This document shows positions 3,287-49,300 of a stretch of DNA of 64,000 bases, piece after piece. The stretch is from Ruditapes philippinarum (Eukaryota). Both the position numbers and the translations under genes were made by a program. The DNA lies in contig NW_026857904.1 of assembly GCF_026571515.1 (NCBI RefSeq), positions 1 to 64,000 on the forward strand, in the 5' to 3' direction. The notes beneath the pieces were generated by a model. The model worked only from the letters and a program-made list of their open reading frames with translations, searched no databases and was not told the DNA's origin. Position 1 is the stretch's first letter; each line of letters opens with the position of its first letter.

Positions 3287-4630
3287 CGAGGGTTCTTCAA
3301 AAAGTTCTGTTATCGGGTATTAAATACAAGATAAAGAAAATATATACGAAAATGGTTTATTTCATCCCTTCAAAATATTCACCACCTACAGAAATACACT
3401 TTTGTAATCGAAATTTCCACTGTCTAAATGCATCAGAGTAGTCTGCCCTTGGTATCAGTCTCAAACACTGATATACAGCACTTCCAAGTCCGCTTCTGGT
3501 GGTATACCGACGTCCAGACAACATCTTTTTTTAGCCGGGGAAATAAAAAAAAGTCACATGGACTTAAATCCGGCGAATAAGGGGGGTGGCTTAACACATT
3601 TACCATTTCTTCAGCGAGAAAGTTAACAACCCCCTTGCTTTTATGCGCGGGGGCATTATCATGTAGTAAATTAACTCCCCTTAATCCAGTACTGGGACGT
3701 TTCTTTTTATAAAACTTTTTTATCCTTTTTAGCACAACGTTCTTATAATATGTTCCAGTGATTGATTTTCCAGATTGTGATGGTATCTGAATAACTGGAC
3801 CAAGATGATTGAAAAAAATGGTGTACAGAACTTTCGTTGAGCTTTTCTGCCGTTTAGCCACTACTGGACGTTTTTGATTTTTTCCTCTCCATTGTTTATT
3901 ATCACCCCTCCTTTGTGGCTCAAACATGTAGACCCAAGTCTCATCTCCAGTTAACATATTAGAAATAGTCCTGCTGTTAAATGTTTTGAACTCTTTAAGG
4001 AGTTTTTTAGAACACATGACTCTCATTTTTTTCTGGTCATTGGTCAGTAAATGGGGCACCCAACGTGCACAAACCTTTTTAAGTCCAAGTTTTTTTGATA
4101 GAATTTCATGAACACTTCCTTCTGAAATGCCAACACTATTAGCCATATCCTTTACTGTATAACGGCCATCTTCTTCCACCAATGCTTTCACAGCAGCCAC
4201 ATGCTTATCAGTCACTGACGACTTCGGACGTCCACTTCGATGACAATCTTTAATCACAGAAAGCCCACCTTTAAATTTTTTCGCCCACCTACAAACTGTC
4301 ATAAATGATACCACAGAATGTCCATAAATACCATTCAGCTCATTATAAATGTCTTTTGGAGATATATGCAAAGCAGTGCGACTTTTAATATAAGTGCGTA
4401 CTTCAACTTTGTAATGTCGTTTCATTGTTATTTCCAAAATATGGCCAGTGTATATGAGTGACACTACTTTAAAACTGAATAATTTTGTCAGTATTGCATC
4501 GATTTGCACGTTTTTTTCGTGCTTATATAGTGTGAATATTTATGTACATAACTGTATATGTTTATTGAAGCAAAACCGTCGATTTCGCTACGGAAGACCA
4601 TTGGTAACAAAACTTTTTGAATAAACCTCG
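3287..4630 (-). mobile_element. Mariner (DD34D) DNA transposon, full length ~1.34 kb
   Basis: Imperfect ~28-bp TIRs (CGAGGGTTCTTCAAAAAGTTCTGTTATC at 3287; reverse complement of the right end CGAGGTTTATTCAAAAAGTTTTGTTACC ending 4630), TA on both flanks (3285-3286, 4631-4632), enclosing a transposase ORF. Confidence 0.95.
3357..4425 (-). pseudogene. Mariner transposase with a single extra base near the C-terminus
   Basis: ATG at 4425 (MKRHYK). Motifs WVPHLL, TGDETW, HDNAPAH and HPPYSPDLSPCD, with 34 residues between the 2nd and 3rd catalytic D. Removing one A from the A7 run (plus-strand T run 3526-3532) restores a mariner-type tail LKKMLSGRRY...RLQKCISVGGEYFEGMK* ending at 3357. Confidence 0.9.
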
Positions 4631-6298
4631 TATATTTTAAAATCTTCTCACAAACTACAATGTGCTGAGCATAGAAACACAGCATGTAGTAACTTGTGGT
4701 TCTCTATGAAAGCTATATAAATCATGGGAGTTGAAGTCAAAATTGGCCCAACCTGGGAATCACTTAGTTTATGTTGACTTGTACATAGAAAACATATTAA
4801 AGGCATATTGTGTTAAACTACAATGTCCAGAGATAAGAGTTTTGCATATAGCATTGCCTTGTGGACTTCAGCAGAAGTTATAATCAAACATACCACTTGG
4901 GACTAAATATGTACACTGACTTGCTGGGTCACTTAGATATAAACATAATTTTATGAAGTAATTAAATATGACTAAAACATATTCTTTTGACTCTACAATG
5001 CTCAGAGCATTTATGTTTTACATATTATTCACCTTGTGGTTGTCTAAAAAGTTATATGAATCAAATTTTTTGCGTCTAAATGGCCCCAGTCTCGGGGGTA
5101 ACAGGTTACTTAGAGTTGTGGTTACTTATTTCATGCAGACTTGGGAGCCATTCTCAAGTCATGTTTGGCATGTATCATTTTCAGCAGACATCTACAAATA
5201 TTTGATAGATAGGCTTACTCCGGAATTAAGAAAATTTTGGGTTTTCCCAGCTTATCCGGGGTACAAACTTATTTTTAAAGTTACAGCTTCGAAAATAAGC
5301 GTTACAGGTGACAAATTTATTGTGAATGGTAATGCACTGTGAAGCTATAATGGTAAAAGTTTGAACTGGGGGATTAGAATGGAAAAACCCACATTTGCCG
5401 AGTTCGGGATAATATCAATTGACAGCAGGGGTTAAAATGTTACATCCCATTAGCCTTACTACTTAATTTTGCATTGAAGAATTGTGACCTTTCCTAGTAA
5501 TGCACATGGATTTTCAGTTTGGCGGGTAATAGTAGTCATTCAGCGTTGAGAGAGCCTACCAGTTAACACGTAAATTAATTTTCAAATTTAATTATTTCCA
5601 GTTCGTTTTGATTATGAAAAATAGAATGTATAATTTGGAATAGTTGTAAATTAAATATTTTGAAACAGTATCATGTGATTAAATACTTCAAACATTTTGA
5701 TTAATGAATTATATGCTTAAATATATGATTTGTCATCGTGATATGTGAATGTGAAATGTATATTGATTTCATTTATATATGAATATATAGTTTGTTTTGC
5801 TCTCTCAAGCGCTCTGAACAAATTAAACACTAAATTTAATTTGATATTGATTGTTGTTGTTTTTGGAGACGAGGTGTTATAAGGGAAATACTGAAACCAA
5901 GATAATCATTCTTTTGGCAAGACATTGACCTATGACATTGAATGTAATTCTGAGTGAACTTGATTTCAGATAGATATTAAATATTTTTATTTGTACAAAA
6001 TTATTATTTCCTATTTTCATTTTGAATAAATGTTAATAGTATTAAGCTAAAGATCAGAAACATGATTAATATCTTCTTATGTTATGATGAATAAGGTGAT
6101 AAAACTAAATAAAGGGACTGTAAGAAATTTAATCCCAGTATTTCCTTATCAAAAAGTATACAAATGACCTTGTTGAAATTCCCTTATTTCTAGGCATTAC
6201 AACATTTTGGTATGAATAGAAGAAAGAAATGACCTAGATAGTAAATAGTATTGTAGGCCAATCCTAGAAGGATAGTAAATTGGAGAATTATATGTTAA

Positions 6299-6662
6299 AG
6301 GCACATTATGCCTCAGAAACAAATAAATTTTTCATTCTTTAGAAAGTGCAAATATGAGGGTTTTTTTTAACATTTAGATAATGATTCTAGAGCATGTTAG
6401 ATGGTTATCACCTGAAGGAAGTTGCACTGAATATGAAATTATTTGTCATAAAGGTAGTAAAATGTAAACAAAATAGTACTTAGACTTCCATGCAAAATAC
6501 TAAATCATTTTAGTATGACTTTACTAAAAAGCAACAGAAGCAAAGGATGGTTCAACAAGTTGGCCAAGAAGTATATTTTTTTTAAAAAATAACAAAACAC
6601 CAAGAACGAAAATGCTTGTGATAAATTGTTATAATAACTTATTTCTGAAGCATAATGGGCCT
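6299..6662. mobile_element. Non-autonomous TIR element with TTAA target duplication (Kolobok-like MITE)
   Basis: TTAA|AGGCACATTATGCCTCAGAAA ... TTTCTGAAGCATAATGGGCCT|TTAA; 19/21 TIR match. AG...CT termini fit Kolobok rather than piggyBac (CCY). Confidence 0.7.
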
Positions 6663-7065
6663 TTAAAAAAATAACACATTTTTTATCTATTACATGCAGT
6701 AATAAAATGTTATCATGGCTGCCTTTATTTTACTGTAGTCCCAAAGTTATAGATTGAAGATGAATTTCGGTCGGATTTTTATTTGATTTAGGTGTACTAA
6801 TATTAACTTTTATGCTCCCATTTCGGGTGGTGGGGGATCATAGATTTGCCCTTCTCTGTCCATCACTTTATTCATCTGTTGACTGATAGAAGAAATGTGG
6901 AATGTATGGGCATTCATGCCCTATGGACACATTCTAGTGACCTTTTAATTTTATAGGCTATTTTGACATTTCTTTAGTTTTTAGAAAATATTGTTGCTTT
7001 GATTTAATAAATAGTGACAGCTTTAAAAACTACTGCAATAAGCTTGCAGAAGGGTAGGGTCATTT

Positions 7066-8196
7066 TGTGTCGCCTTGAAAAAGGCGCCATGTAGGGGTTA
7101 CTTTTGTCGGCGTTGTCAGCGTCGTTGTCGGCGTTATGGCGTCCCCTAAAGCTTGTGCTGAGTATAAGACAGTCATTATAAGTTTGATTGACTTCAAACT
7201 TGGTATGAATGCTTCTGATAATGACCCGAAGTGCAGTGCACAAGAACCGGTACTCTGCACTTCTTATTTTTTGAGTTATTGCCCTTTGTTAATTTTCATA
7301 CTTTATTTTTGTCCGAGCCATTTCTCCTAAAGTATAAAATCTATGGACTTGAAACTTCATAGGATGATAGATCTCATTAAGAAGAAGTGCAGTGCACAAG
7401 AATGTCACTCTGCATTTCTTATTTTTGGAGTTATTGCCCTTTGATAATTTTCATACTTTATTTTTGTCTGGGCCATTTCTCCTAAAGTATAAAAGCTATA
7501 GACTTGAAACTTCATAGGATAATAGATCTCATTAAGAAGAAGTGCAGTGCACAAGAACTGGTACTCTGCATTTTTTTTTTTTTTTTTGAGTTATTGCCCT
7601 TTGTTAATTTTCATACTTTATTTTTGTCCAGGCCATTTCTCATAAATTATATAGAGGATATTAAATGAGTGTAAGTTCAATACAGAATTTATTGCATGAG
7701 TTGAATAAAATTATATTATGCGAGCCTCTGGCGAGCATAATATTGTTTTATTCCACGAGTGCAATAAATTCAGTAATGAACTTACACGAATTTAATATCC
7801 TATTTATCACATACCCAAAATAAAGACCGTTTAAAGTGAAATAAAAGTCATTTTTCATTGACGCGCCTATAGTATAACGCTAACATTCAGCGCGTCTTTA
7901 CTCTTTGTTCGTATAACACTAATGACGTCAAGTCAAACTATATGCACGGCCGTGCAATACCATATTTACGGAGTCGCAAAATCGGCACGGGTGTGTGATA
8001 AAAAGCTTTAGACTTGAAACTTAATAGGATGATAGATCTTATTGATAAGAAGTGCAGTGCACAGAAACTGCTGCTCTGCATTTCTTATTTTTTGAGTTAT
8101 TGTCCTTTGTTGATTTTCAAATTTCATTTTTGTCGTGGGCATTTCTCCTAAACTATATTGTTCACAAGGCGACACATCCGACTCGCGGAGTTCTAG
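7066..8196 (+). mobile_element. Helentron-associated non-autonomous element (HINE/DINE-like) with ~160-bp internal tandem repeats
   Basis: SubTIR TGTGTCGCCTT with 5' hairpin, (GTCGGC/GTT) microsatellite, tandem units, 3' subTIR AAGGCGACACA, small hairpin, CTAG end, inserted in a T run. Confidence 0.8.
7652..8001. mobile_element. Hairpin-rich non-autonomous element nested in the HINE tandem array (possibly Crypton-derived)
   Basis: Interrupts a repeat unit at TATA|AAAGCT. Imperfect ~150-bp palindrome 7655-7801 plus inverted repeat TTTATCACATACCC/GGGTGTGTGATAAA. A related fragment lies inverted at ~44160-44260. Family assignment is a guess. Confidence 0.6.
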
Positions 8197-8693
8197 TTTT
8201 TTTTGGGTTTTTTGGCGTCTTGTTAAGTTATAGAACATAGTTGTAGTTATTTTAGTTTGAATATGATGCATTGGAACCATTCTTAAATTATGTCATTGGA
8301 ATAAAAGTTTTCAAGTTATAAAGCTAGCTTCCTGAAGGTGTTAACTTTGTGTTTGTTTATTTTTTGAATGCCAGCTTGGGACTAGAATAATACACAGAAA
8401 AGGTATCAAGCATGATTTCTGCCATCAGAGGTGGTAAAATCATTTGTCCTTCATGCCCAGGTTGTCACACAGCCTGTACAGACAAGTGAAATTTTACCAA
8501 AAATTAAAGATATGATCAGATCATTTGGACAAGTAAGTCAAAATCAGATTTTGCCAGCTCTGCTGCAGCCATGTTTAAATTGAATTTGTCACTGTCACCT
8601 ATGTATTTAATGATATTAGGTACATTAGACGGTAAATTTTATTTATAAATCGATTTGGCTATAAATGATTACTTAACTCCTATCTATTTTCAG

Positions 8694-11600
8694 GCAACAA
8701 ATGGCTATGTATGGCTTCAATAGCTTTTGCATCATATCAATCACTGTATCCCATCATGCTGGTTGTTCCAGCAGCCATCTTCTTCAATACTGTAAGTACT
8801 TGTAGAAATAAAGTCTTAATTTATAGATCTATTCTTCAATGAAATACAGCAATATGGTACTTAATATTTACAATATATAGGTAATGTATATAGTTTTTCA
8901 ATGTGTATGACTTTTAATATGAATATTGAACACATTCTAATGGTGCCTATACCATGTGACTTTTTGTGATCTGCATGATGGCAGAAAAGAAATACCAAAG
9001 ACTGTCCAGGGTTGAGTAACCAGAAGCATTCGTCAGAGTTACGATCATCGTTAAGCCTTGGTTAAGCTCTAGTTAGTAATTTACCTTCTAACCTAAAACG
9101 TTCGTTATTCCAAAAATTCTAACGAAACTGTCGTTAATTAACGAAAACTTCGGAGTACACGTTAGACCTTCGTTGAAGGAAAAACAACGTGTGAAGCTCT
9201 TTCAACAAATTTTTTATGAGTATATATTATTTTTTTGTATTGTTTATGCATTTCTATCAATGTATCATCACACTAAGTATGATTATGTACTATGTACATG
9301 TCAAAATAAAATAATGTTCTGTTCTGTATTTTATTGTATATTCAAAGACTTAGGATTGCTTTCTTTAGATGCAATTTACGGCGAACGTTNNNNNNNNNNN
9401 NNNNNNNNNNNNNNNNNNNNNNNNNNNNNNNNNNNNNNNNNNNNNNNNNNNNNNNNNNNNNNNNNNNNNNNNNNNNNNNNNNNNNNNNNNNNNNNNNNNN
9501 NNNNNNNNNNNNNNNNNNNNNNNNNNNAGCAGCTGTGTGTTCACAGATATATATGGCTGTACATTTGTACAAAAAAATTTAAAACAATTTATAAACAGTT
9601 TAAAAACAATTATTTGTATTGTTGATATTGCATTTTAATTAATGGGGGTAATGAGGTAACCAAATACAAAGAATGTTTTTTGGAAAACTTTTGTTTTCGT
9701 TAAATACAATGATTTTTTCAACCCTAAAACATTCCATGTCTGCGTTACTCACTAGAATGAGAGAGTTCTACACTTTATAAGTTTTTAATGAAACACTTCA
9801 TAAGTTATGGAAGAAAACAATATCTGGACTGTCTATTGTACAGGATCAAGCAGGTCATAAAATGATGTGTGGTATGTACATTATTCTACACAAACCTAGA
9901 ATAATTGTCTGTCTCCAGTATAGGATGAAGTGGTGAATCTCTTACATTTGAGTTAATGTAAGTTTGAATATTGAAATAAAATCCAGTTTAAATTCAAAAA
10001 TGTATTGTTTTATTTTAAAAAAAACATGTTTCAATGTTGACAACCCTGCAAACTGACAGATTGTTGGTGGTACTTCTGTGGTGCCAGTATGAGCTTTAAT
10101 TAATGTACAAGGGGCATCTAGGGTCTAAAGTTGATACAAATTTACTTAAGTTTCATCATGTTGGAAGCTCTAAGCTTATTGAAACATTCCAAGGGTCTTT
10201 AACACTTTTAAAGTTAAAAAATCTGTGAGTCACTTTGCTGAAAAAAAATACAATGTACTTTTAAATGTGCAATCTGCTTATTTCAGAACATGTCCGATGG
10301 GAAGAAATCAAAGGAATCCGTGCCACTGCCAGTGTATGGACGGACAGCTATGATTAGTCTAGGATTCACAGCTATATTAATTTTTGTGTCCTATTTTTTT
10401 TTTGCACATTCTTGGAAGTTCCTGCATGCTACAACAGGCTTTATGTAAGGTTCTTTGTAGATTCTTTCAAGAAATACTCTCTATTTAACTGAGTAAAATT
10501 ACAGAATGCACTGTTCCTGAATATTTTGTACAAGTTTAGTTTTCAGCGTTTTGATGATACCTTATTTTAGGTTTTGTAACATCTGAAACTGTACGTGAAA
10601 TGGCTGTTTTAAACTTGCTTTGGTATAGACATATTTATTTAAGCTTGATTGCTAAACAAGTGCTTTCAACTTAAATTAATCACTTTCGAACCAGTACTGG
10701 TGTCAAATGAAGAAACATGATTGTGATCTGATTAGGGCTCAAACCAGTGATCCCTGGGTTGAGAGGCAGACACACTTACCACTAGGCCACCACTTTCTTT
10801 CACACTTGCTTTGATGTGTGGACATTGTTAGATAATCAGGGGTGTCAAAATCAATTGTCCGTATTGCCCAGATTGTTCCATAGCCTGTACAAACAAGTGG
10901 CATCTTGAAGAAATACTATATAAATATCATATGAATAACTTAAGGGAATGCTTCAGTTAAAAATGGAGAAGTTAGTCGTAATCAGATTTTGGTGACCCAG
11001 GATAATAAAGATTGTTTCAGACTATTAAGTATTAAAAGAAAAATTATGAACTCTTGACATAGAAACTTTATCTTAATGTAATTATTGGCCTTCACAAAAT
11101 ATGTATAAGAATGTAAATTTGCCACTGTTAAAGCCACACAAGTGGTGATTAAATCATGAATTTTAAAATTGTCTATTTCAGCCTAGGTGTGCCAGATCTA
11201 ACACCAAACATGGGGGTATTTTGGTATTTTTTCACAGAGATGTTTGAGCATTTTCGTCCATTTTTCATTTGTGTGTTCCAGATCAACGCATTTCTCTACA
11301 CAGTTCCACTAGCTATCAAACTGAAGTATGCATGTTTTTGAATAGTGTTTTTTTTTTAAATAAATAGCAAAGTAAAAGAAATGTTGCAGATGCATACATA
11401 CTAAAAAATCGCTTTTTCTGTGTATTACAATTAACCTTATCTGCTTGTTGTTTTATTAAACAATAGTTTCCATTTTATATTTCACAAAAGATTGTGTGGT
11501 GATGTTAACATAGATATTTCTGAGTTGAGATAACATCAACATTTATTTTTTGTTCTGATCAGACTGTGCGGATGCGCAGGCTGGTCTGGATCCATGCTGG

Positions 11601-27372: not shown

Positions 27373-30300
27373 ATGGCTGTTACGCGAACTGTGATCGGTG
27401 TGGATGTTGGTGGAACAAATACTGATGCCGTTGTCATAGATAGAGGTACAGACAAATTGACAGTCCTTTCACATGCGAAAACTCTGACAACGGCAGATGT
27501 TACCACCGGTGTTAAAGCAGCAATTCATCTCGGACTTTTGAACTCACGGAAGAAAAACCGTACTTTATCCGTGCAACAAGTTAACATTGGGACTACCCAT
27601 TTTATAAATGCGGTTGTAGAAGGTAAACATTTAGCAAAGGTAGCTGTTATTCGTCTGTGTGGCACTGCTTCGCGAAAATTGCCTCCTTTCTGCGATTTTC
27701 CTGAAAAATTGGCCAGTAAAATCAGAGGTAGTGTATTCTTGTTGAACGGAGGATACCAATTTGATGGTACAGAAATAACGGAGATAAACGAAAAAGAGCT
27801 TGAAAATTGTGTTGATATATTGAAAAGTAACGGTGAAAAGAACATTGCAGTATCCGGCATCTTTTCACCTGTTAGAGATGAACAGGAACGTCGAGTGGTC
27901 GACTTTATTCGGAAACGTTTTCCTGAAGCAAGCGTTACTTCAAGTCATGAAATTGGAAAAATAGGAATGTTAGAGCGGGAAAATGCTACAATTCTAAATG
28001 AGTGTATTAAACCGCTTTGCCTTAGGACAATCAAGGGATTTCGTTCAGCTCTAGATGATTTAGGTTTGAAATGTCCGCTGTACCTTACTCAGAATGACGG
28101 TACGATTTTGGAGGAAGAGAAAGCGCTTCGTTACCCAGTCTTTTCCTTTGCTTCCGGTGCTACAAATAGCATGCGTGGTGCTGCATTTTTGACCGGCTTG
28201 AAAGAGGCAATCGTAATCGATATTGGCGGAACGAGTACCGATGTTGGCGTTTTACTTAAAGGATTTGCAAGGGAAGCATCTACCGAGGTGAAAGTAGGCG
28301 GTATAAGAACAAATTTCCGTATGCCTGACGTCATAAGCATCGGTTTAGGAGGAGGATCATACGTTACGCATGTGAAGGTGAAAGGTCAAGATCAAATCGT
28401 TGTTGGTCCACAAAGTGCTGGTTATTGTATTGATAGAGAAGCATTTGTCTTTGCTCAGCCAGGTGAAATTGGTGATCGAGTTTTGACAGCAACTGATGTT
28501 GCTGTTGCCTCAGGGATCGCTAATGTCGGTCTTATAAGTAATGTTAAGCATTTAAATAAAGAGGAAATAAACGTGGCTGTTGATAAAATAAAAAGTATGA
28601 TCACAGTATGCGTTGACCAGATGAGATTCAACGATAGAAATTTGCCGTTAATTCTTGTTGGGGGCGGAAGCATTATCGTCGACAGAAGCTGGAAGTTTGA
28701 TGGCATATCAGACATTTTTCGCCCAGAATATTTTGATGTTGCTAATGCCATAGGTGCGGCCTTAAGTCAGATCTCAACAACCAAAGACCGAGTTGTTGAC
28801 CTGGAAAAATATTTTGATACGGATGAAATGAACCACCAAGTTTCATGTAAGCTTATAGAATGTTCTGAAACTTCTGAGGAGAAATCAGCGATAATAGAAA
28901 AAGTGAGAAAGACTTTCTTTCAAAGTGCGCGCGAAAAAGCCATGCAAGAATTACTGGAACTTGCGAAACAAGAAACTATTGCATCAGGGGCAGATTCAAA
29001 TTCCATTTGCCTTGTGGAAAAAGATGATATTAGTTTGTCATACATTCCTGGAAATGCAACTAGAATAAAATTGAAAGTTGTTGGAGATCTGAAGATTGGG
29101 TCGGATTCAGATAAATTCGTGGTTCCAGAATCGTTTTACAATCAGAGACCGCCACAAACGGGTTTGCAGACAAAAAAGCAAACAATCACAAATACGGGCG
29201 TTATTCTATCTGAGGATAGCAACAAACTAAAGATAGAAACGCCAACAATTGACAAAGACACCGGGGAATGGCTACTATCTGAGTACGACATTGAATGCAT
29301 TCATATTGGAGCAGGAATTTTAGGCTGTGGTGGCGGAGGAAGTCCTCATCTTGGACGTCTTTTAGCACTGAGATCATTACGCAGTGGGAAGAAAATCCGT
29401 GTACTTACACCTTCCAGGTTTTACCAAAATGCTCACCCAGAAAATGATTTAGTATGTTCTGTAGCGTTTATGGGGGCTCCAGTTGCGGTGTATGAGAAAC
29501 TTGTAGCCGGAAATGAAACAACTGGTGCGTTGGCATGTTTACAGGATTTATATTGTGTCGGTGGTTATAAAGATGGAGACCTTACCAACAAAGATGGGGT
29601 GGATATAGTAAAAGAGGAACATGTTACATATATTGATGATTACAAAGTGACTGCTGGGGAACAGTTGAGCATGGGAGACAAGAGATTAAGCGCATTGATG
29701 AGTGGCGAAATCGGTGGAATGAACGGTATGGAACCTTTAGTCGTAGGTGCAGCCTTGGACCTCCCAGTACTAGACTGCGATGGAATGGGTCGAGCTTTTC
29801 CAGAACTGCAGATGTTTACACCATTTATATATGGAAACAACCCTTACCCAGCAACGTTGGCAGACGACAAAGGTCGGCATGCAGCAATTTTGTATGCTGA
29901 CTCTCCAAAAAGTGTAGAAAATCATTTTCGAAAGGTTGTTATCAATATGGGATGTAGTGGAGGAACAGTTTTGTCGCATTTTAACAAAGATCGAGTCTTG
30001 TCGTCAACAGTTCTGCATAGTACAAGTCATGCATGGCGCATTGGGGATACTATCTTACGAGCTCGCACTGAAAATACTTCACCTGTTGATGAAGTCGTGA
30101 AATTAGAACACGGGAAAATTCTCGTCTATGGTAAAATTTCTGACGTTTTAAGGGAAACAACAGGTGGTTTCAACAAGGGCAAATTTGTTATTACTGGTCT
30201 TGACCAGTATGCTGGCAAAACGATTAATATAGAATTTCAAAACGAATTTCTTATTGCAAGAGAAGTCAGCGAAGGAAATCATAAGCTGCTTGCATGTGTC

Positions 30301-30525
30301 CCAGATTTGATCACGCTGATGGATGCAGATACGGCACAGCCCATTCAAACGGAAGAGCTAAGATTTGGTATCCGTGTTGCTGTTGTTGCTATGCGAGCGT
30401 CACCAACCATTAGTTCAGAGCAGGCCTTGAAATTCGTTGGTCCACAAGCATTTGGTTACGGTGCAGATGTTCAATACACTCCTCTTTGTGACTTTGTAGA
30501 CGCCGGACCTATTGGACCTATGTGA
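27373..30525 (+). CDS. Intronless hydantoinase A/oxoprolinase-family + DUF917 fusion protein, 1050 aa
   Basis: Uninterrupted 3153-bp ORF with a good Kozak context (AATATGG). N-half has HyuA motifs GVDVGGTNTD, GTTHFINA, ERENATILN, QNDGT, SGATNSMRGA, DIGGTSTD, SIGLGGGS, VANAIGAA. C-half has DUF917 motifs GILGCGGGGSP, MGAP, EIGGMNG, DCDGMGRAFPELQM. Confidence 0.93.
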   Translation: MAVTRTVIGVDVGGTNTDAVVIDRGTDKLTVLSHAKTLTTADVTTGVKAAIHLGLLNSRKKNRTLSVQQVNIGTTHFINAVVEGKHLAKVAVIRLCGTASRKLPPFCDFPEKLASKIRGSVFLLNGGYQFDGTEITEINEKELENCVDILKSNGEKNIAVSGIFSPVRDEQERRVVDFIRKRFPEASVTSSHEIGKIGMLERENATILNECIKPLCLRTIKGFRSALDDLGLKCPLYLTQNDGTILEEEKALRYPVFSFASGATNSMRGAAFLTGLKEAIVIDIGGTSTDVGVLLKGFAREASTEVKVGGIRTNFRMPDVISIGLGGGSYVTHVKVKGQDQIVVGPQSAGYCIDREAFVFAQPGEIGDRVLTATDVAVASGIANVGLISNVKHLNKEEINVAVDKIKSMITVCVDQMRFNDRNLPLILVGGGSIIVDRSWKFDGISDIFRPEYFDVANAIGAALSQISTTKDRVVDLEKYFDTDEMNHQVSCKLIECSETSEEKSAIIEKVRKTFFQSAREKAMQELLELAKQETIASGADSNSICLVEKDDISLSYIPGNATRIKLKVVGDLKIGSDSDKFVVPESFYNQRPPQTGLQTKKQTITNTGVILSEDSNKLKIETPTIDKDTGEWLLSEYDIECIHIGAGILGCGGGGSPHLGRLLALRSLRSGKKIRVLTPSRFYQNAHPENDLVCSVAFMGAPVAVYEKLVAGNETTGALACLQDLYCVGGYKDGDLTNKDGVDIVKEEHVTYIDDYKVTAGEQLSMGDKRLSALMSGEIGGMNGMEPLVVGAALDLPVLDCDGMGRAFPELQMFTPFIYGNNPYPATLADDKGRHAAILYADSPKSVENHFRKVVINMGCSGGTVLSHFNKDRVLSSTVLHSTSHAWRIGDTILRARTENTSPVDEVVKLEHGKILVYGKISDVLRETTGGFNKGKFVITGLDQYAGKTINIEFQNEFLIAREVSEGNHKLLACVPDLITLMDADTAQPIQTEELRFGIRVAVVAMRASPTISSEQALKFVGPQAFGYGADVQYTPLCDFVDAGPIGPM

Positions 30526-40300: not shown

Positions 40301-43300
40301 GGAAGTTATTCAGTGATTTTAGTAGCAATCAAACAATCAAAGTATTGAAGTTGTCCAAACATCAGTATATAGCCTGCTTTTAATGTACAGGTCTGTCATG
40401 ATCAACTCCAACTGCTCAACAGCTTCACCCATAATCTACTGCATTAGTGTAATTGACTAGTTCTGCTTTCAATTTGGAATAATCCATTTTTAATGTAAAG
40501 GTTTTGATAGACCAAATACAAATATAGAGCTACTATTATAGTCTGACCAGGCTCTATACTCTTAGACTAAATGTATAGAGTATGGTCAGACTGTACAGAT
40601 GTGCAGGCTGGCCTGACTCAATACTGGTTGTAAAGGGGCTGATAATTTTCGGTTCCAGGCAGGTTAAGGGTTAAACTGCATCCCCCCCCCCCCCAATCAA
40701 ATGGTCAGTACTTACCTCTACTTCCTCGGCTGTAGCAACTTCTGGATTTTTGAATAGTTCACGAGCTTCTTTGTACATCCAATTCTCAGGTATTGTGTAT
40801 TTCTGATAAAGGTTAAAAACAAAACATATTTATGTTAGAAAGAACATTCAAACTTTTATCAAAAGACTATCTTATGCAACATTATGTTAATTATTCAAAT
40901 CTTGGGCAATTAAGTTAAAAGGGGCATAACTTCAAAACTATTGATTTCAGAATTATGTCCCTTGTCTAACAACGCCCCCTTTGTTTTCACAAGCATTTCA
41001 AGTTTCATGCTAATACCTTTGAAATGTTACAATAATGGGCTACATCAAAGTTTTTGTACAGCAACTACGCTGCAGCAATCATAATAGTTCAACTTTTTCT
41101 TTGAAATGGACAAGCTGATAAGTATTTCTTAACAATATTTCTAAAATTATTTGTATTCTGCAATTATAGTAACCTTACTACTGTGCATCTGATATTTCTC
41201 AATACAGTGTAACTTCCGAATTCCGGAACTTCTGAAATCCGGAAACTTCTAAAAACCGAACAATTTTTTCGGTCCCGATTTTTTCCCTTCTATTTTCTAT
41301 TAATATAATACTTCTGAATTCCGGAACTTCTAAATTCTGAATTCCGGACGATATTTTCGTAAAATTAGAGTCAAATCAATGCAATTTTACCTCCGAAAAC
41401 CGGAAATATCCAAAGGTGTGAAATACATTGTAAATCGAGAATGTTTACCCTGCAGGAAGATTTAATCTCCCTATCGATTGTTTACTAATTAGCGGTGATC
41501 GTGTAATTTGACACGCGTTAAAATCACAAACTGTGAAATGGTATGTTTGAAGTGATGCGGTTAATCAAAGTAATTTACCGCGGTCAGTTAATTTGAAGTG
41601 TTTATTAGCGGATTAAATCACAATTAGTTGGGACAATGTATGCATCAAACGTCTATAGGGATTTTATTGCATTTGATGTAATAATTAATTAACTAGCATC
41701 GGACGATATGTAAGTTTATGCAATTATCAACATTTCTACAAACTGATAGAAATTCCAAAGCATTTTCAGGTGTAAGATAAAAATGTATTCTTTTCATTCA
41801 CATCTTTATCTTGATTAAAATACTATTATATATGATATTACAGTAATGGCCACATCTTCCTTGACATTTAGTGATATTAAGTGGTTTAGTCTTGTCCACA
41901 TTATCATAAACCTCTGAATTCCGGAAACCTCTGAAATCCGAACTTTTTGACAAGTCCCATGGGTGTTCGGTTTTCGGAAGTTACACTGTATAAAATTAAA
42001 TATAAGTTGTTTTTTTTTACCTTTAAACCTAGATCTTACATTATTTCATCGTTGGATTTATATTATTTAAATTGATCTATAACACCATATACAACAGTCT
42101 CTTACCTTCAGATCTATATTTTTCATTATTTCATCAATAGATTTATATTGTTTAATCAGATCTATAGCTCGCTTTGGTCCAATTCCACGTATAGACTCAC
42201 AGTAATCACAGCCCAGCAATATACACAGATCTATAAACTGTAATACAAACATGTTACATGTATTTCTCATCAATTTGTTTTGTTTGGTCTGAAGTCACAC
42301 AAACACAGGACATGACTGTCATGTGTAAACCTTCCAGCTTTACTGGTAGAGGAAAACCAAAGGCTCTTTGTGCGCTATTTCAGTCATAAGCAGGAAACAA
42401 CAGTAAAACCAACAACCATCTGTAAGGTAGCTTGATAACTTCTTTATATTGGTATATCTTAAAATGAGGAATATGTTTCAAATACAGGATATTTTATAGA
42501 TGACTTTCTAATTCAAAGTGTTTCATTGTTTATATATATCTGGCTTTTACTTCAATCATAAGCACATTTATTGTCATACCTTGGCAGGCAGTCCACCTTA
42601 CCAGTTTTTCTTGATAACAAACCAGTTATTACTAATTAATCAAAAATGACCATCCTAGCATTTGAAAAAAAATGTTAAAAAATCAATATGGAATAGTCCA
42701 CATTATATCTGATATTAAAACTGTATAGATGACAACTGATGATCAATATCCAAGTTTTACCTCGTCGTTAGACAATTCCAAACCCTGTAAGATTCTATCA
42801 TAGTGATACTCCTTTATTGGCATCTTCCTGGAAACAAAAAAAGAATAGATTATAAGAATCTTACACTGGATGCCAGTACAGACCGGAATATTTAGCTGAA
42901 GGGTAACTGTTTCCAGTGGTACAAGGCTCAGACGTCATTCAAAACACATGGGGGGTGTAAGACAGGTTTTTCTAGCACAGGTGTAAACAGTAGATAATCC
43001 TGTCTGATATGCAAGAAAACATCATTAATTAAATATGTTGTACAAATGAGTAGCAAATGTGACACACATTGGACTACTCTTAGGTGTTCAAGATCTACCT
43101 CCTTTATTTCATCCTTGTAAAAGCAATAACCAGTAGAAAATGATTCCTTTAACATCTTCACATGCCATAAACAAAAGAATTTGACCAGATTACGACTCAA
43201 AATTACTTTTGTGTTGACAGCAATACAGAGCCAGCTAGTAACATTTATATTTTGACTTTAAAGTTAAGTGTACTACCACTAAAATGTGAACAAGACTTTT

Positions 43301-46300: not shown

Positions 46301-49300
46301 AGTTGCTAGCTAGCTATCCAGCTACATGTAGCTTACAGAAGATCGATGGTCATACTAAGTATCTAACTTATGCCTGAAATAATGCATGGATGGGCTCCAC
46401 CAATACAGTTGGAAAATCATCGTTGGACCATTACAGTGCCAGTGTGACTTAAAATCCAACAAACAATCAATCAATGATTTACAAATCTGAAGCTGACAAA
46501 TGAGTCTGTACGTGAAATGAAAACTAAACCACAACACAAATTCAGAGTCAAGTTAAAAAGTTAACATAAAGAGGTATCTACCTGCTTCTTCAGCCTTCTC
46601 TAAAGCTTTCTGTGCCTCATCACGTCTTTCCTTTCTCTTTTCAAGCTGTAAATTATACATCATACTTTTTAATACTTTTACTTAAGATATTAAAACTTTT
46701 AAAGTTGTAAGTCTGAAATTAAATGGTTAACAATGCAATCAAGGCACAAATTATTATAAAGACCTGAAAATGTTCTTTTTCTTCTTTTTTTCAATTATAC
46801 AGCTTTAAAACCAACATTTCATTTCAAAAATACTTGTTTATTCCAAAAGCAATTCATTATCAAGGCTTGAACACACCTTGTACAGTGTTTATGTCTTAAC
46901 TTTGAATCTGATCATGTCTTGTAGTTAAGTAGGGTTCTTTTTAACAAGGGCTACCATTACTGTAAGTTTAAAATTTTATCCTTAACTCTGCTTAATTCAG
47001 AAACTCAATAGATCAAATATGTCATCAAGTTTACACTGGTTCTTCCATATTGTATGAATTGAAATCAAATGCAAGGAGCTTGGTTTAAACATATTTCTTT
47101 AAGCTAAATTGCGAAATAAGTTCTTGCAACTTATATTAATCGCTTTCGAGTCTGCTTCCTGCAACCAACCAGTACTACTGGTGTCATTAAAGAAACATGG
47201 CTGTGACCCGATTAGGGCTTGAACCAATGATCATCGGGTTGACAGGCAGACACCTTTACCACTAGGGCACTGCTCCCCTGTGAGTGAGTACAGGTATTAC
47301 GATATGCATTATTGCAAGGAGCTTAAGTAAGTCAATAACTGTGTCTGACTTTGAACTCCACCAAAAATGTCAAACATTTTGGCATACCTTTTACCCAAAA
47401 CAATGAAATGACAGGAAATATTAATGGGATAAAACAAGATTGCATTTGAGAAAAATGCTATGCCACCGCATTAATACAACACTAAATAGTAGTGTAGGAA
47501 CAGTTTTTTTTGTTTCTATACAATTAAAGATTGTCATAATGCATATCTAATTCTTATTATCAGACTAGTGGTTAAATCTACTGTTAACTCAATAAAAGAT
47601 CAGAGTAGGAATATTTCAATGCACTCGAGTCTAGTGAATTTGGTGGTGAAGGTCATATTTCACACAGCCTAAAATTTCATGACTGCATCAAAGGACAACA
47701 TGTAATACACTTTGTCAAAATCTAGGTCAGCTGATATCAAAGTTCACTTTTAATTTTGACACTGGAGGCAAAATTTGAACAACTTTGGTTGAGTACCTAT
47801 AAATGATATCATTTAACAAATATTAAAGCCTTAAGCCTTGTACCTTCAGACAATAAGATTTTTTTGAATTTTTTCTATTTGTATATATTGAAAATCAATG
47901 ACCCCAGGGCTATTATTTGAACATTCTTGCTAGAGGTTCATTTCACAATGTTTCATGCAAAGTATCTAACCTCTAGCCAATGTCAATTGCTAGAAGAAAT
48001 GTTTTTAAAGTTTTTACTATAAGTTTTTACTATAAGTTTTTACTATGTAAATATGAGGAAAATATGTACATATAGTGAAAATCCATGACCCCCGGGGCAG
48101 GGCCGATTTTGACCCCAGGGCTATAATTTGAACAATATTGGTAGAGGTCTACCAGACAATGCCTTATGCAAAATATCTAAGCTCTAGGCCTTTTGGGTCT
48201 TTACAAAAAGGTGTTTTAAGTTTTTACTATATGTACATATAGTGAAAATCCATGACCCCCGGGGCGGGGCCGATTTTAACCCCAGGGCTATAATTTGAAC
48301 AATATTGGTAGAGGTCTTCCAGACAATGCCTTATGCAAAATATCCAAGCTCTAGGCCTTTTGGGTCTTTACAAAAAGGTATTTTAAGTTTTTACTATATG
48401 TACATATAGTGAAAATCAATGACCCCTGGGGCGGGGCCGATTTTGACCCCAGGGCTATAATTTGAATAATCTTGGTAGAGGTCTACCATACAATGCCTTA
48501 TGCAAAATATCTAAGCTCTAGGCCTTTTGGGTCTTTACAAGAAGATTTTCTAAATTTATTCTTATAATTCCTTTTGGTTGCCATGGCAACCAGATTTCTG
48601 CATGGAATAAAATTCTTTGAACAACTTTGGAAGCCCTTCACCCAAGGATCAATCCTGCCAAGTTTGGTTGAAATTGGACAAGTGGTTTTTTACAAGAAGA
48701 TTTTTTAAGTTCACTATATAATCTATATAACACACACACACACAAACAAACAAACAAACAAACACACACACACACGCACACACAGGTGAATCGCTATATG
48801 CCACCGCATCGCAGATGCTGCGGTGGCATAAAAACAACATATATATATTTTTATGAACTGATATCTTACCTCACCAGACTTCATTTCTGGTGGTTTACCA
48901 TCAAATACATACACAGGTTTGATACCATTCTCTACCATACGAATTGTACGATAAAACATTCCCATTAAATGACTGAAATAGAATTAAAAGAAAAATTAGT
49001 TCAATAGAATTCCTCAGTTCCCGTTGCAAGATTAAATATGTGGTGCTTTGGTACCATTAGTATGCAAATGGCTTAAAAAAATTAAAATAAGGTCTGAAAC
49101 ATCTAGTTTTTTAACATGTTAATTTGTTTTACAATCATTATTCCTAAACTTATATATTAGTGATAATTTCAAAATGTATTGTGGACTCACTAGAAAGAAA
49201 AATCTTAAAAAATTGGAATATACACTAACACTCAGAATGTTACCTAACCTTGCAAATTGACTATTTAAAACTATTACTACATTATTAAAAAGAAATCTTT

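Follow-up and report, generated by a model that had tools for sequence, protein, structure and literature searches.

In the window analysed here (64,000 nucleotides of the clam Ruditapes philippinarum, positions 1 to 64,000 of contig NW_026857904.1), a single intronless open reading frame (ORF) joins a hydantoinase-A (HyuA)-like ATPase to a DUF917 domain in one chain of 1050 amino acids (aa). A reading made from the letters of the DNA, with no database searches (the sequence-only reading), had proposed an enzyme of thiohydantoin/ergothioneine-type catabolism and had mentioned, as an alternative, that DUF917 may replace hydantoinase B (HyuB) as the catalytic partner. It is this alternative that is favoured by the results below: on balance the protein would be a two-site enzyme that needs no separate partner, consumes ATP and acts on a cyclic amide or ureide, DUF917 standing in for HyuB, a proposal built on analogy with the known HyuA/HyuB enzymes. 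It draws on the domains and motifs of the two halves, on orthologues in many animal phyla and the matching architecture in ascomycete clusters, on the pairing of their prokaryotic counterparts, on module-bearing genomes in which HyuB seems not to be needed, on predicted binding through a conserved interface, and on the compactness of the fusion, its single origin and the existence of a minimal bacterial operon.

Architecture and predicted fold of the fusion

The four Pfam domains found in the ORF (Table 1) each score far above their curated gathering cut-offs (25.2 bits for Hydant_A_N, 22.9 for Hydantoinase_A and 27 for both S-Me-THD_N and S-Me-THD_C), and the same scan of the 1050-aa ORF gave no Hydantoinase_B (PF02538) match. 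The sequence-only reading had likewise seen no hydantoinase B domain, and the boundaries it had drawn (HyuA at about aa 1-570, DUF917 at about aa 625-1050) agree with the AlphaFold2 model; its assignment of the C-terminal half to DUF917, which it had put forward as refutable, is borne out both by the two S-Me-THD scores and by the fold described below.

The N-terminal half carries all three elements expected of an ASKHA ATPase: two phosphate loops of the DxGGT type, the first presumably at aa 9-18 as in ASKHA ATPases generally, and one GGG loop for adenosine, with invariance scored across 32 eukaryotic sequences. Its best matches, by sequence (phmmer, E 2e-21 to 3e-8) as well as by fold (Foldseek, E 1e-27 to 3e-17), are the HyuA-type subunits of N-methylhydantoinase (PDB 9h03, 7hk5), caprolactamase (6yra), acetone carboxylase (5svb/5svc, 5m45) and acetophenone carboxylase (5l9w), which, together with 5-oxoprolinase, serve as comparators. 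In 5-oxoprolinase, N-methylhydantoinase, caprolactamase and acetone carboxylase, the HyuA-type subunit phosphorylates the carbonyl oxygen of the substrate. What the clam protein has in common with these enzymes is the HyuA fold, the ASKHA ATP motifs and, as proposed, the logic of an ATPase working with a second catalytic unit, whereas it differs in lacking a HyuB domain, in having a DUF917 partner with a fold unlike that of HyuB, and in the length of its N-terminal half, which is ~170 aa shorter than canonical HyuA (about 680-730 aa).

It could also be that DUF917 holds the sole catalytic site and that the HyuA-like half, in the manner of some other ASKHA proteins, is no substrate kinase but an accessory that uses ATP for activation, gating or repair. 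Two stretches (aa 8-52 and 273-306) match the MutL/GlmL accessory protein and the BcrAD/BadFG activases weakly in Pfam and NCBIfam, which points in this direction, as do distant ASKHA fold matches (including diol dehydratase reactivating factor and the benzoyl-CoA reductase ATPase) and the fact that stand-alone DUF917 enzymes in ergothioneine-utilisation (Ert) clusters work without an ATPase. The matches to accessory families are, however, all below their cut-offs, whereas the best matches of this half are to subunits that act on the substrate itself, and an accessory role is considered unlikely.

Modelled alone, the C-terminal half reaches a predicted local distance difference test score (pLDDT) of 93.6. 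In a wide fold search it matched PDB 2o3i (Z 39.7, root-mean-square deviation 2.2 Å over 341 aligned residues, 26% identity), and beyond 2o3i nothing in that search exceeded Z 5.5. The possibility that DUF917 is a diverged HyuB was ruled out on this basis, the search having returned only 2o3i and no likeness to HyuB. The matched protein (CV_3147 of Chromobacterium violaceum, from structural genomics) is the only solved structure with this fold; it is a stand-alone protein with no assigned function or ligand, and it lacks the stretch at aa ~727-765 of the clam protein (~29551-29667). This stretch adds some 35-45 aa to the N-domain of DUF917, is modelled with short strands and is also present in the orthologue consensus. 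For the full-length protein, the AlphaFold2 model (built with 32 orthologues) has a mean pLDDT of 87.4, only aa ~590-620 being weak, and a predicted template-modelling score (pTM) of 0.87, from which the two halves, each folded and with a flexible linker between them, are predicted to be held in a fixed arrangement.

Table 1. Features of the fusion gene and its product; nucleotide positions are those of the window
Feature	Positions	Strand	Residues (aa)	Basis or remarks
Complete single-exon coding sequence, HyuA-like/DUF917 fusion	27373..30525	+		1050 codons + stop, ATG start
N-terminal half, short hydantoinase-A-like ASKHA ATPase	27373..29097	+	1-575	Pfam, fold and sequence matches
Hydant_A_N (PF05378)			8-181	Pfam, 107.8 bits
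GVDVGGTNTD, presumed first phosphate-binding motif of the ASKHA fold	27397..27426	+	9-18	G9, D11, G13, G14, T15, T17, D18 invariant
Hydantoinase_A (PF01968)			202-351	Pfam, 103.1 bits; profile positions 1-149 of 291
DIGGTSTD, second phosphate-binding motif	28219..28242	+	283-290	D283, G285, G286, T287, D290 invariant
VGGGS, adenosine-binding motif	28657..28671	+	429-433	V429, G430-G432 invariant
Poorly conserved linker	29098..29262	+	576-630	pLDDT about 50-63 at aa ~590-620
C-terminal half, DUF917 of the HyuA-partnered subfamily	29263..30522	+	631-1050	S-Me-THD_N + S-Me-THD_C, fold
GCGGGG, glycine-rich loop	29323..29340	+	651-656	kept throughout the DUF917 family, including true desulfurases
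S-Me-THD_N (PF06032)			two stretches, best 767-837	Pfam, 151.9 bits
DCDGMGRAFPE, signature motif of the partnered subfamily	29773..29805	+	801-811	alignment
S-Me-THD_C (PF20906)			845-1038	Pfam, 187.5 bits

The prokaryotic two-gene module and the proposed mechanism

Stand-alone DUF917 proteins of bacteria and archaea are 35-41% identical to the C-terminal half of the clam protein. When 80 prokaryotic loci were retrieved with an alignment of DUF917 only (HyuA not being part of the query), 76 of them also contained a HyuA-like gene that matches clam aa ~8-575 and almost always adjoins DUF917, so that the statement in the sequence-only reading that the two genes are neighbours in bacteria proved correct. 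A second set of 80 metagenomic loci was retrieved with the fused query, and its co-occurrence (78 of 80) is therefore not independent evidence. By tblastn, the N-terminal half of the clam protein is 35-47% and the C-terminal half 31-42% identical to the prokaryotic pairs, of which the full HyuA-like ORFs have a median length of 518 aa (a ~510-aa type) and the DUF917 partners are about 365 aa long. The clam protein has the same composition, with a HyuA-like unit of this short type, a DUF917 half of the partnered subfamily and a conserved predicted interface, but the prokaryotic module (itself uncharacterised) is made as two polypeptides, the counterparts of which in the clam form one chain with ~55 aa of linker between them. 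In none of the 160 prokaryotic loci was a fused ORF found, the halves always being separate, and the idea of a fused prokaryotic ancestor finds no support in this sample.

In Pseudaminobacter soli (locus L005) the HyuA-like gene (4460-6004) precedes DUF917 (6001-7122), while in Paenibacillus (L026) DUF917 (5974-7095) precedes the HyuA-like gene (7092-8702); in each case the genes overlap by 4 bp (L005:6001-6004, L026:7092-7095). The 4-bp overlap is seen whichever of the two genes comes first and suggests translational coupling. Elsewhere, two tandem DUF917 paralogues lie beside one HyuA-like gene (in about twenty of the loci L002-L081, and also at L094:3621-5628, L129:2802-4649 and L155:8079-10093).

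In quick maximum-likelihood trees, one per half, the 32 eukaryotic sequences group as a single clade with full branch support (SH-aLRT 100). The bacterial sister groups in the two trees have loci in common (L003, L011), in which the gene order (HyuA, then DUF917) is the same as in the fusion. Rooting and sampling of these trees are limited, and while they show the two halves to be congruent, they do not identify a donor. Judged from these sequence comparisons, the eukaryotic fusion is best described as a two-gene module, widespread in bacteria and archaea, whose parts have become one chain.

HyuB is not recurrent among the neighbours of the prokaryotic module. A PF02538 search of the module-bearing genomes of Komagataeibacter (L038) and Paenibacillus (L026) gave no match anywhere, although these assemblies may be incomplete, and it is this same Paenibacillus genome that has the minimal operon, consisting of a TetR regulator, an NCS1 permease, DUF917 and the HyuA-like gene. 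In general, the recurrent neighbours are an ATP-binding cassette (ABC) system of the Dpp/Opp type with an SBP_bac_5 binding protein, NCS1 permeases, and TetR and AsnC regulators; amidohydrolases, a PuuE-like deacetylase, short-chain dehydrogenases/reductases and molybdenum hydroxylases occur occasionally. The nucleobase/hydantoin-type NCS1 permeases, the Dpp/Opp importers and the amidohydrolases suggest a substrate that is taken up into the cell, either an N-heterocycle or a cyclic compound derived from an amino acid or peptide.

These neighbours also bear on the direction of the reaction. The HyuA superfamily includes carboxylases, and an ATP-dependent synthetic role (i.e. closing a ring, forming an amidine, or carboxylating a substrate like the acetone and acetophenone carboxylases) would fit with the enrichment of DUF917 genes, described as uncharacterised, beside cyclodipeptide oxidases, in gene clusters with a possible part in making peptide-derived metabolites (bioRxiv 10.1101/2023.09.25.559410). 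A synthetic role is nevertheless judged distinctly unlikely, since the recurrent neighbours are importers (SBP_bac_5, Opp/Dpp, NCS1) and catabolic-type regulators, accompanied by amidohydrolases, and the minimal operon adds a permease to the pair.

In complex prediction with the separate L005 proteins, a score of 0.85 was obtained in all three runs, compared to 0.15 for the best control, where the mark set for this score was reached by 51 of 78 solved complexes and by 2 of 108 mismatched pairs. The contacts agreed between runs for at least 86%, at a partner pLDDT of at least 90, and the prediction supports, without proving it, binding of the bacterial HyuA-like and DUF917 proteins. Many of the predicted interface residues are kept in the clam: the conserved contacts are D108, D131, F164, G198, L200, S303, Y557, P559 and R564 in its N-terminal half, and G701, P703, E708, G834, G860, K921, D924, R997, G999 and R1001 in its C-terminal half. 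E708, K921, D924 and R1001 vary little or not at all in the partnered subfamily, and the stand-alone desulfurases have other residues in their place, which is the pattern expected if these residues serve the partnership.

By analogy with the HyuA-type subunits, the N-terminal half of the proposed two-site enzyme would bind ATP and use it to phosphorylate a small cyclic amide or ureide at a carbonyl oxygen. Packed on the N-terminal half via the conserved interface and filling the role of HyuB, the DUF917 half would subsequently carry out a hydrolytic addition-elimination at the activated carbon, leading to ring opening or substitution. The stand-alone DUF917 desulfurases might perform the same formal chemistry on substrates with a good leaving group (SH, SCH3), and hence without an ATPase partner.

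Several points weigh against this mechanism. The division of labour is drawn from the analogy with HyuA/HyuB, even though the fold of DUF917 is unlike that of HyuB. The Hydantoinase_A match is limited to half of the Pfam profile, because of which the N-terminal half could work in a way that differs from canonical HyuA. The complex score is a model confidence and not a measurement, and the two HyuB-less genomes may, as said, be incomplete assemblies. Finally, the literature searched contains no assay of an enzyme of the HyuA-like plus DUF917 type and no functional study of either the fusion or the desulfurases.

Relation to the thiohydantoin desulfurases

The characterised members of the DUF917 family are thiohydantoin desulfurases, as the sequence-only reading had stated: curated NCBIfam models name them thiohydantoin desulfurase (NF058529) and S-methyl thiohydantoin desulfurase (NF058532). 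Following this, the clam protein could be a bifunctional thiohistidine/ergothioneine enzyme, in which DUF917 desulfurates a thiohydantoin and the HyuA-like half opens the resulting hydantoin ring with ATP. In its favour, the DUF917 half shares both Pfam families (PF06032 and PF20906) with these desulfurases, the two desulfurase models are the only NCBIfam matches in the C-terminal half, and the glycine loop, D801, R807, R853, N957 and E958 are common to the clam and the true desulfurases.

The scores, however, are far too low, at 59.2 bits on NF058529 and 61.4 bits on NF058532 versus cut-offs of 440 and 450. On these models true members score 602-604 bits, and even DUF917 proteins of the bacterial partner type get no further than 100-120 bits. 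The clam half is only 22-24% identical to true desulfurases, which were not retrieved by tblastn with the clam DUF917 domain at E 1e-3.

Differences are also seen at the level of residues, for which three desulfurase-type sequences were compared (two passing the cut-off and one, L084, sub-threshold). The partnered subfamily has 73 columns with a conservation of at least 90%; of these, 27 are common to all three (mostly Gly/Pro) and 46, many of the polar ones included, differ in at least one. E708, E779, N784, D803, F809, E811, K921, R927 and Q956 are replaced in both cut-off-passing desulfurases, while E849 and D978 are replaced in these two but not in L084. The signature DxDGMGRAFPE is invariant in the partnered subfamily; D801, R807, A808 and P810 in it are common to the desulfurases, where D803 is V or A, F809 is H and E811 is T. 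Several acidic and basic residues that the partnered subfamily conserves are thus different in the desulfurases.

The genomic setting differs as well. True desulfurases sit in ergothioneine-utilisation clusters with ErtE, ErtD (a hydantoin-5-propionate amidohydrolase), thiourocanate hydratase and a histidine-ammonia-lyase (HAL)-like gene, and no HyuA-like sequence was found within 10 kb of the desulfurase genes. In that pathway the ring is opened by ErtD, an ATP-independent amidohydrolase. Moreover, no HyuA-type subunit is known to open rings unaided by a second catalytic subunit (as in 5-oxoprolinase and caprolactamase). One complete-looking bacterial Ert cluster, with HAL-like lyase, ErtD, ErtE, thiohydantoin desulfurase and thiourocanate hydratase, lies at L165:5151-12724 and served as a comparator.

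The proposed role in thiohydantoin/ergothioneine-type catabolism is thus not upheld, and a bifunctional enzyme of this kind is regarded as very improbable. By its sequence, the clam half is to be placed as a family relative of the desulfurases and not as their orthologue. The question is thereby narrowed to a DUF917 subfamily of its own, partnered by an ATPase, for which the two-site enzyme described above is preferred, and the bacterial pairs, above all the minimal operon of Paenibacillus, lend themselves to finding the substrate.

Distribution in eukaryotes and the clam locus

A protein word search returned 1443 relatives, and the following figures are from the best 120 of these. All 120 carry this architecture, mostly as full-length fusions (with more than 100 full-length orthologues), and most are 41-80% identical across 98-100% of the length. 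They come from bivalves, gastropods, a chiton, a brachiopod, a nemertean, a priapulid, a sea spider, amphioxus, hemichordates, echinoderms, cnidarians and placozoans, and where the source names them it is as 'uncharacterized protein' or 'hydantoinase'. The nearest is LOC123549025 of Mercenaria mercenaria (P0003, 78% identity), while LOC128243507 of Mya arenaria (P0007) is 63% identical; both have four matching Pfam domains. The nearest bivalve orthologues are 1045-1086 aa at full length and fall in the same clade as the clam in both half-trees, with no substantive difference. Copy number does vary: LOC123549023, LOC123549024 and LOC123549025 of Mercenaria (P0004, P0122, P0003) have consecutive numbers on one chromosome, which suggests tandem expansion, and Gigantopelta and Haliotis have several fusion copies versus one in the clam.

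No vertebrate, insect, nematode or tunicate is among these best 120 of 1443 matches, which does not imply a wider absence. The sequence-only reading knew of no mammalian counterpart, and this list agrees with it as far as the missing vertebrates go but does not establish their absence. Its statement that the genes are fused in fungi is matched by three clusters in the ESM Atlas (127-165 members, all eukaryotic, most often Ascomycota) with the same architecture, a lead and not a test, by which the same fusion apparently occurs in fungi. The novelty it attributed to the pathway in animals was overstated, since orthologues have already been deposited, as uncharacterised, for dozens of animals. 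By these comparisons the fusion is old and widespread rather than special to this clam, whose gene is an ordinary orthologue within a catalogued, uncharacterised family.

The interest therefore lies in the family as a whole, i.e. in a strongly conserved and apparently HyuB-independent module spanning bacteria, archaea, fungi and invertebrates. Tentatively, and with less confidence than for the clam enzyme itself, it may be proposed that the HyuA-like ATPase and DUF917 together form an undescribed class of ATP-dependent cyclic-amide/ureide/lactam hydrolase, with DUF917 instead of HyuB as the second catalytic component, present in archaea, bacteria, fungi and most invertebrate phyla but seemingly not in vertebrates. 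If so, an activity that opens heterocycles would be present in clams and many other invertebrates but missing in vertebrates, and its substrate might be a hydantoin, a pyrimidine-like ring or a cyclic dipeptide derived from the diet or from microbes.

The gene itself was described by the sequence-only reading as one intronless 1050-aa ORF, which is confirmed by the ORF listing. A genome search found a single copy of the fusion in the assembly (1.4 Gb, 15,874 contigs). It is the sole ORF of at least 150 aa within 25-33 kb of the window. Upstream of the ATG the open frame extends by just 15 codons (to a total of 1065 aa), and the N-terminus agrees with the orthologue consensus. The window is AT-rich with few long ORFs (30-39% guanine plus cytosine (GC), compared to 42% in the ORF), and a 1050-codon open frame cannot plausibly have arisen by chance in DNA with a GC content of 33-42%.

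A single exon of 3.15 kb is nonetheless atypical for this genome, in which other genes have small exons, and could be taken as the mark of a dead retrocopy, of a gene recently acquired by horizontal transfer or of contaminating bacterial DNA, without function in the clam. The contrast is seen with the FEN1/XPG-like neighbour and with the HyuB-type gene of the clam, to which the Hydantoinase_B (PF02538) matches in the genome are limited (contig C9850:138997-243225 (+), at least 8 small exons over more than 100 kb) and which is presumably the canonical 5-oxoprolinase gene. Against any of these origins, the frame is intact, none of the residues that are invariant in the 32 eukaryotic sequences has been lost, no second, intron-bearing parent copy exists in the genome, orthologues occur throughout the animals in one clade apart from prokaryotes, the flanks are AT-rich and ORF-poor with eukaryotic genes and a DDE transposase remnant, and the fused form was seen in no prokaryotic locus examined. 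Contamination and a recent retrocopy are ruled out by base composition, single copy, animal orthologues and eukaryotic neighbours, and a non-functional or foreign gene in general is extremely unlikely. Because of its AT-rich, ORF-poor surroundings, its eukaryotic neighbour genes and the separate multi-exon HyuB gene in the same genome, this is a genuine, intact animal locus.

Regarding the neighbours, small minus-strand exons of a FEN1/XPG-family nuclease lie downstream of the fusion gene and span at least 7 kb, with XPG_N at 48723-48965 and a helix-hairpin-helix (5'-3' exonuclease fold) at 42067-42273. On the other side, a 358-aa ORF with HTH_32 and DDE_3 domains (3433-4509, minus strand) is probably the remnant of a Tc1/mariner-like transposase.

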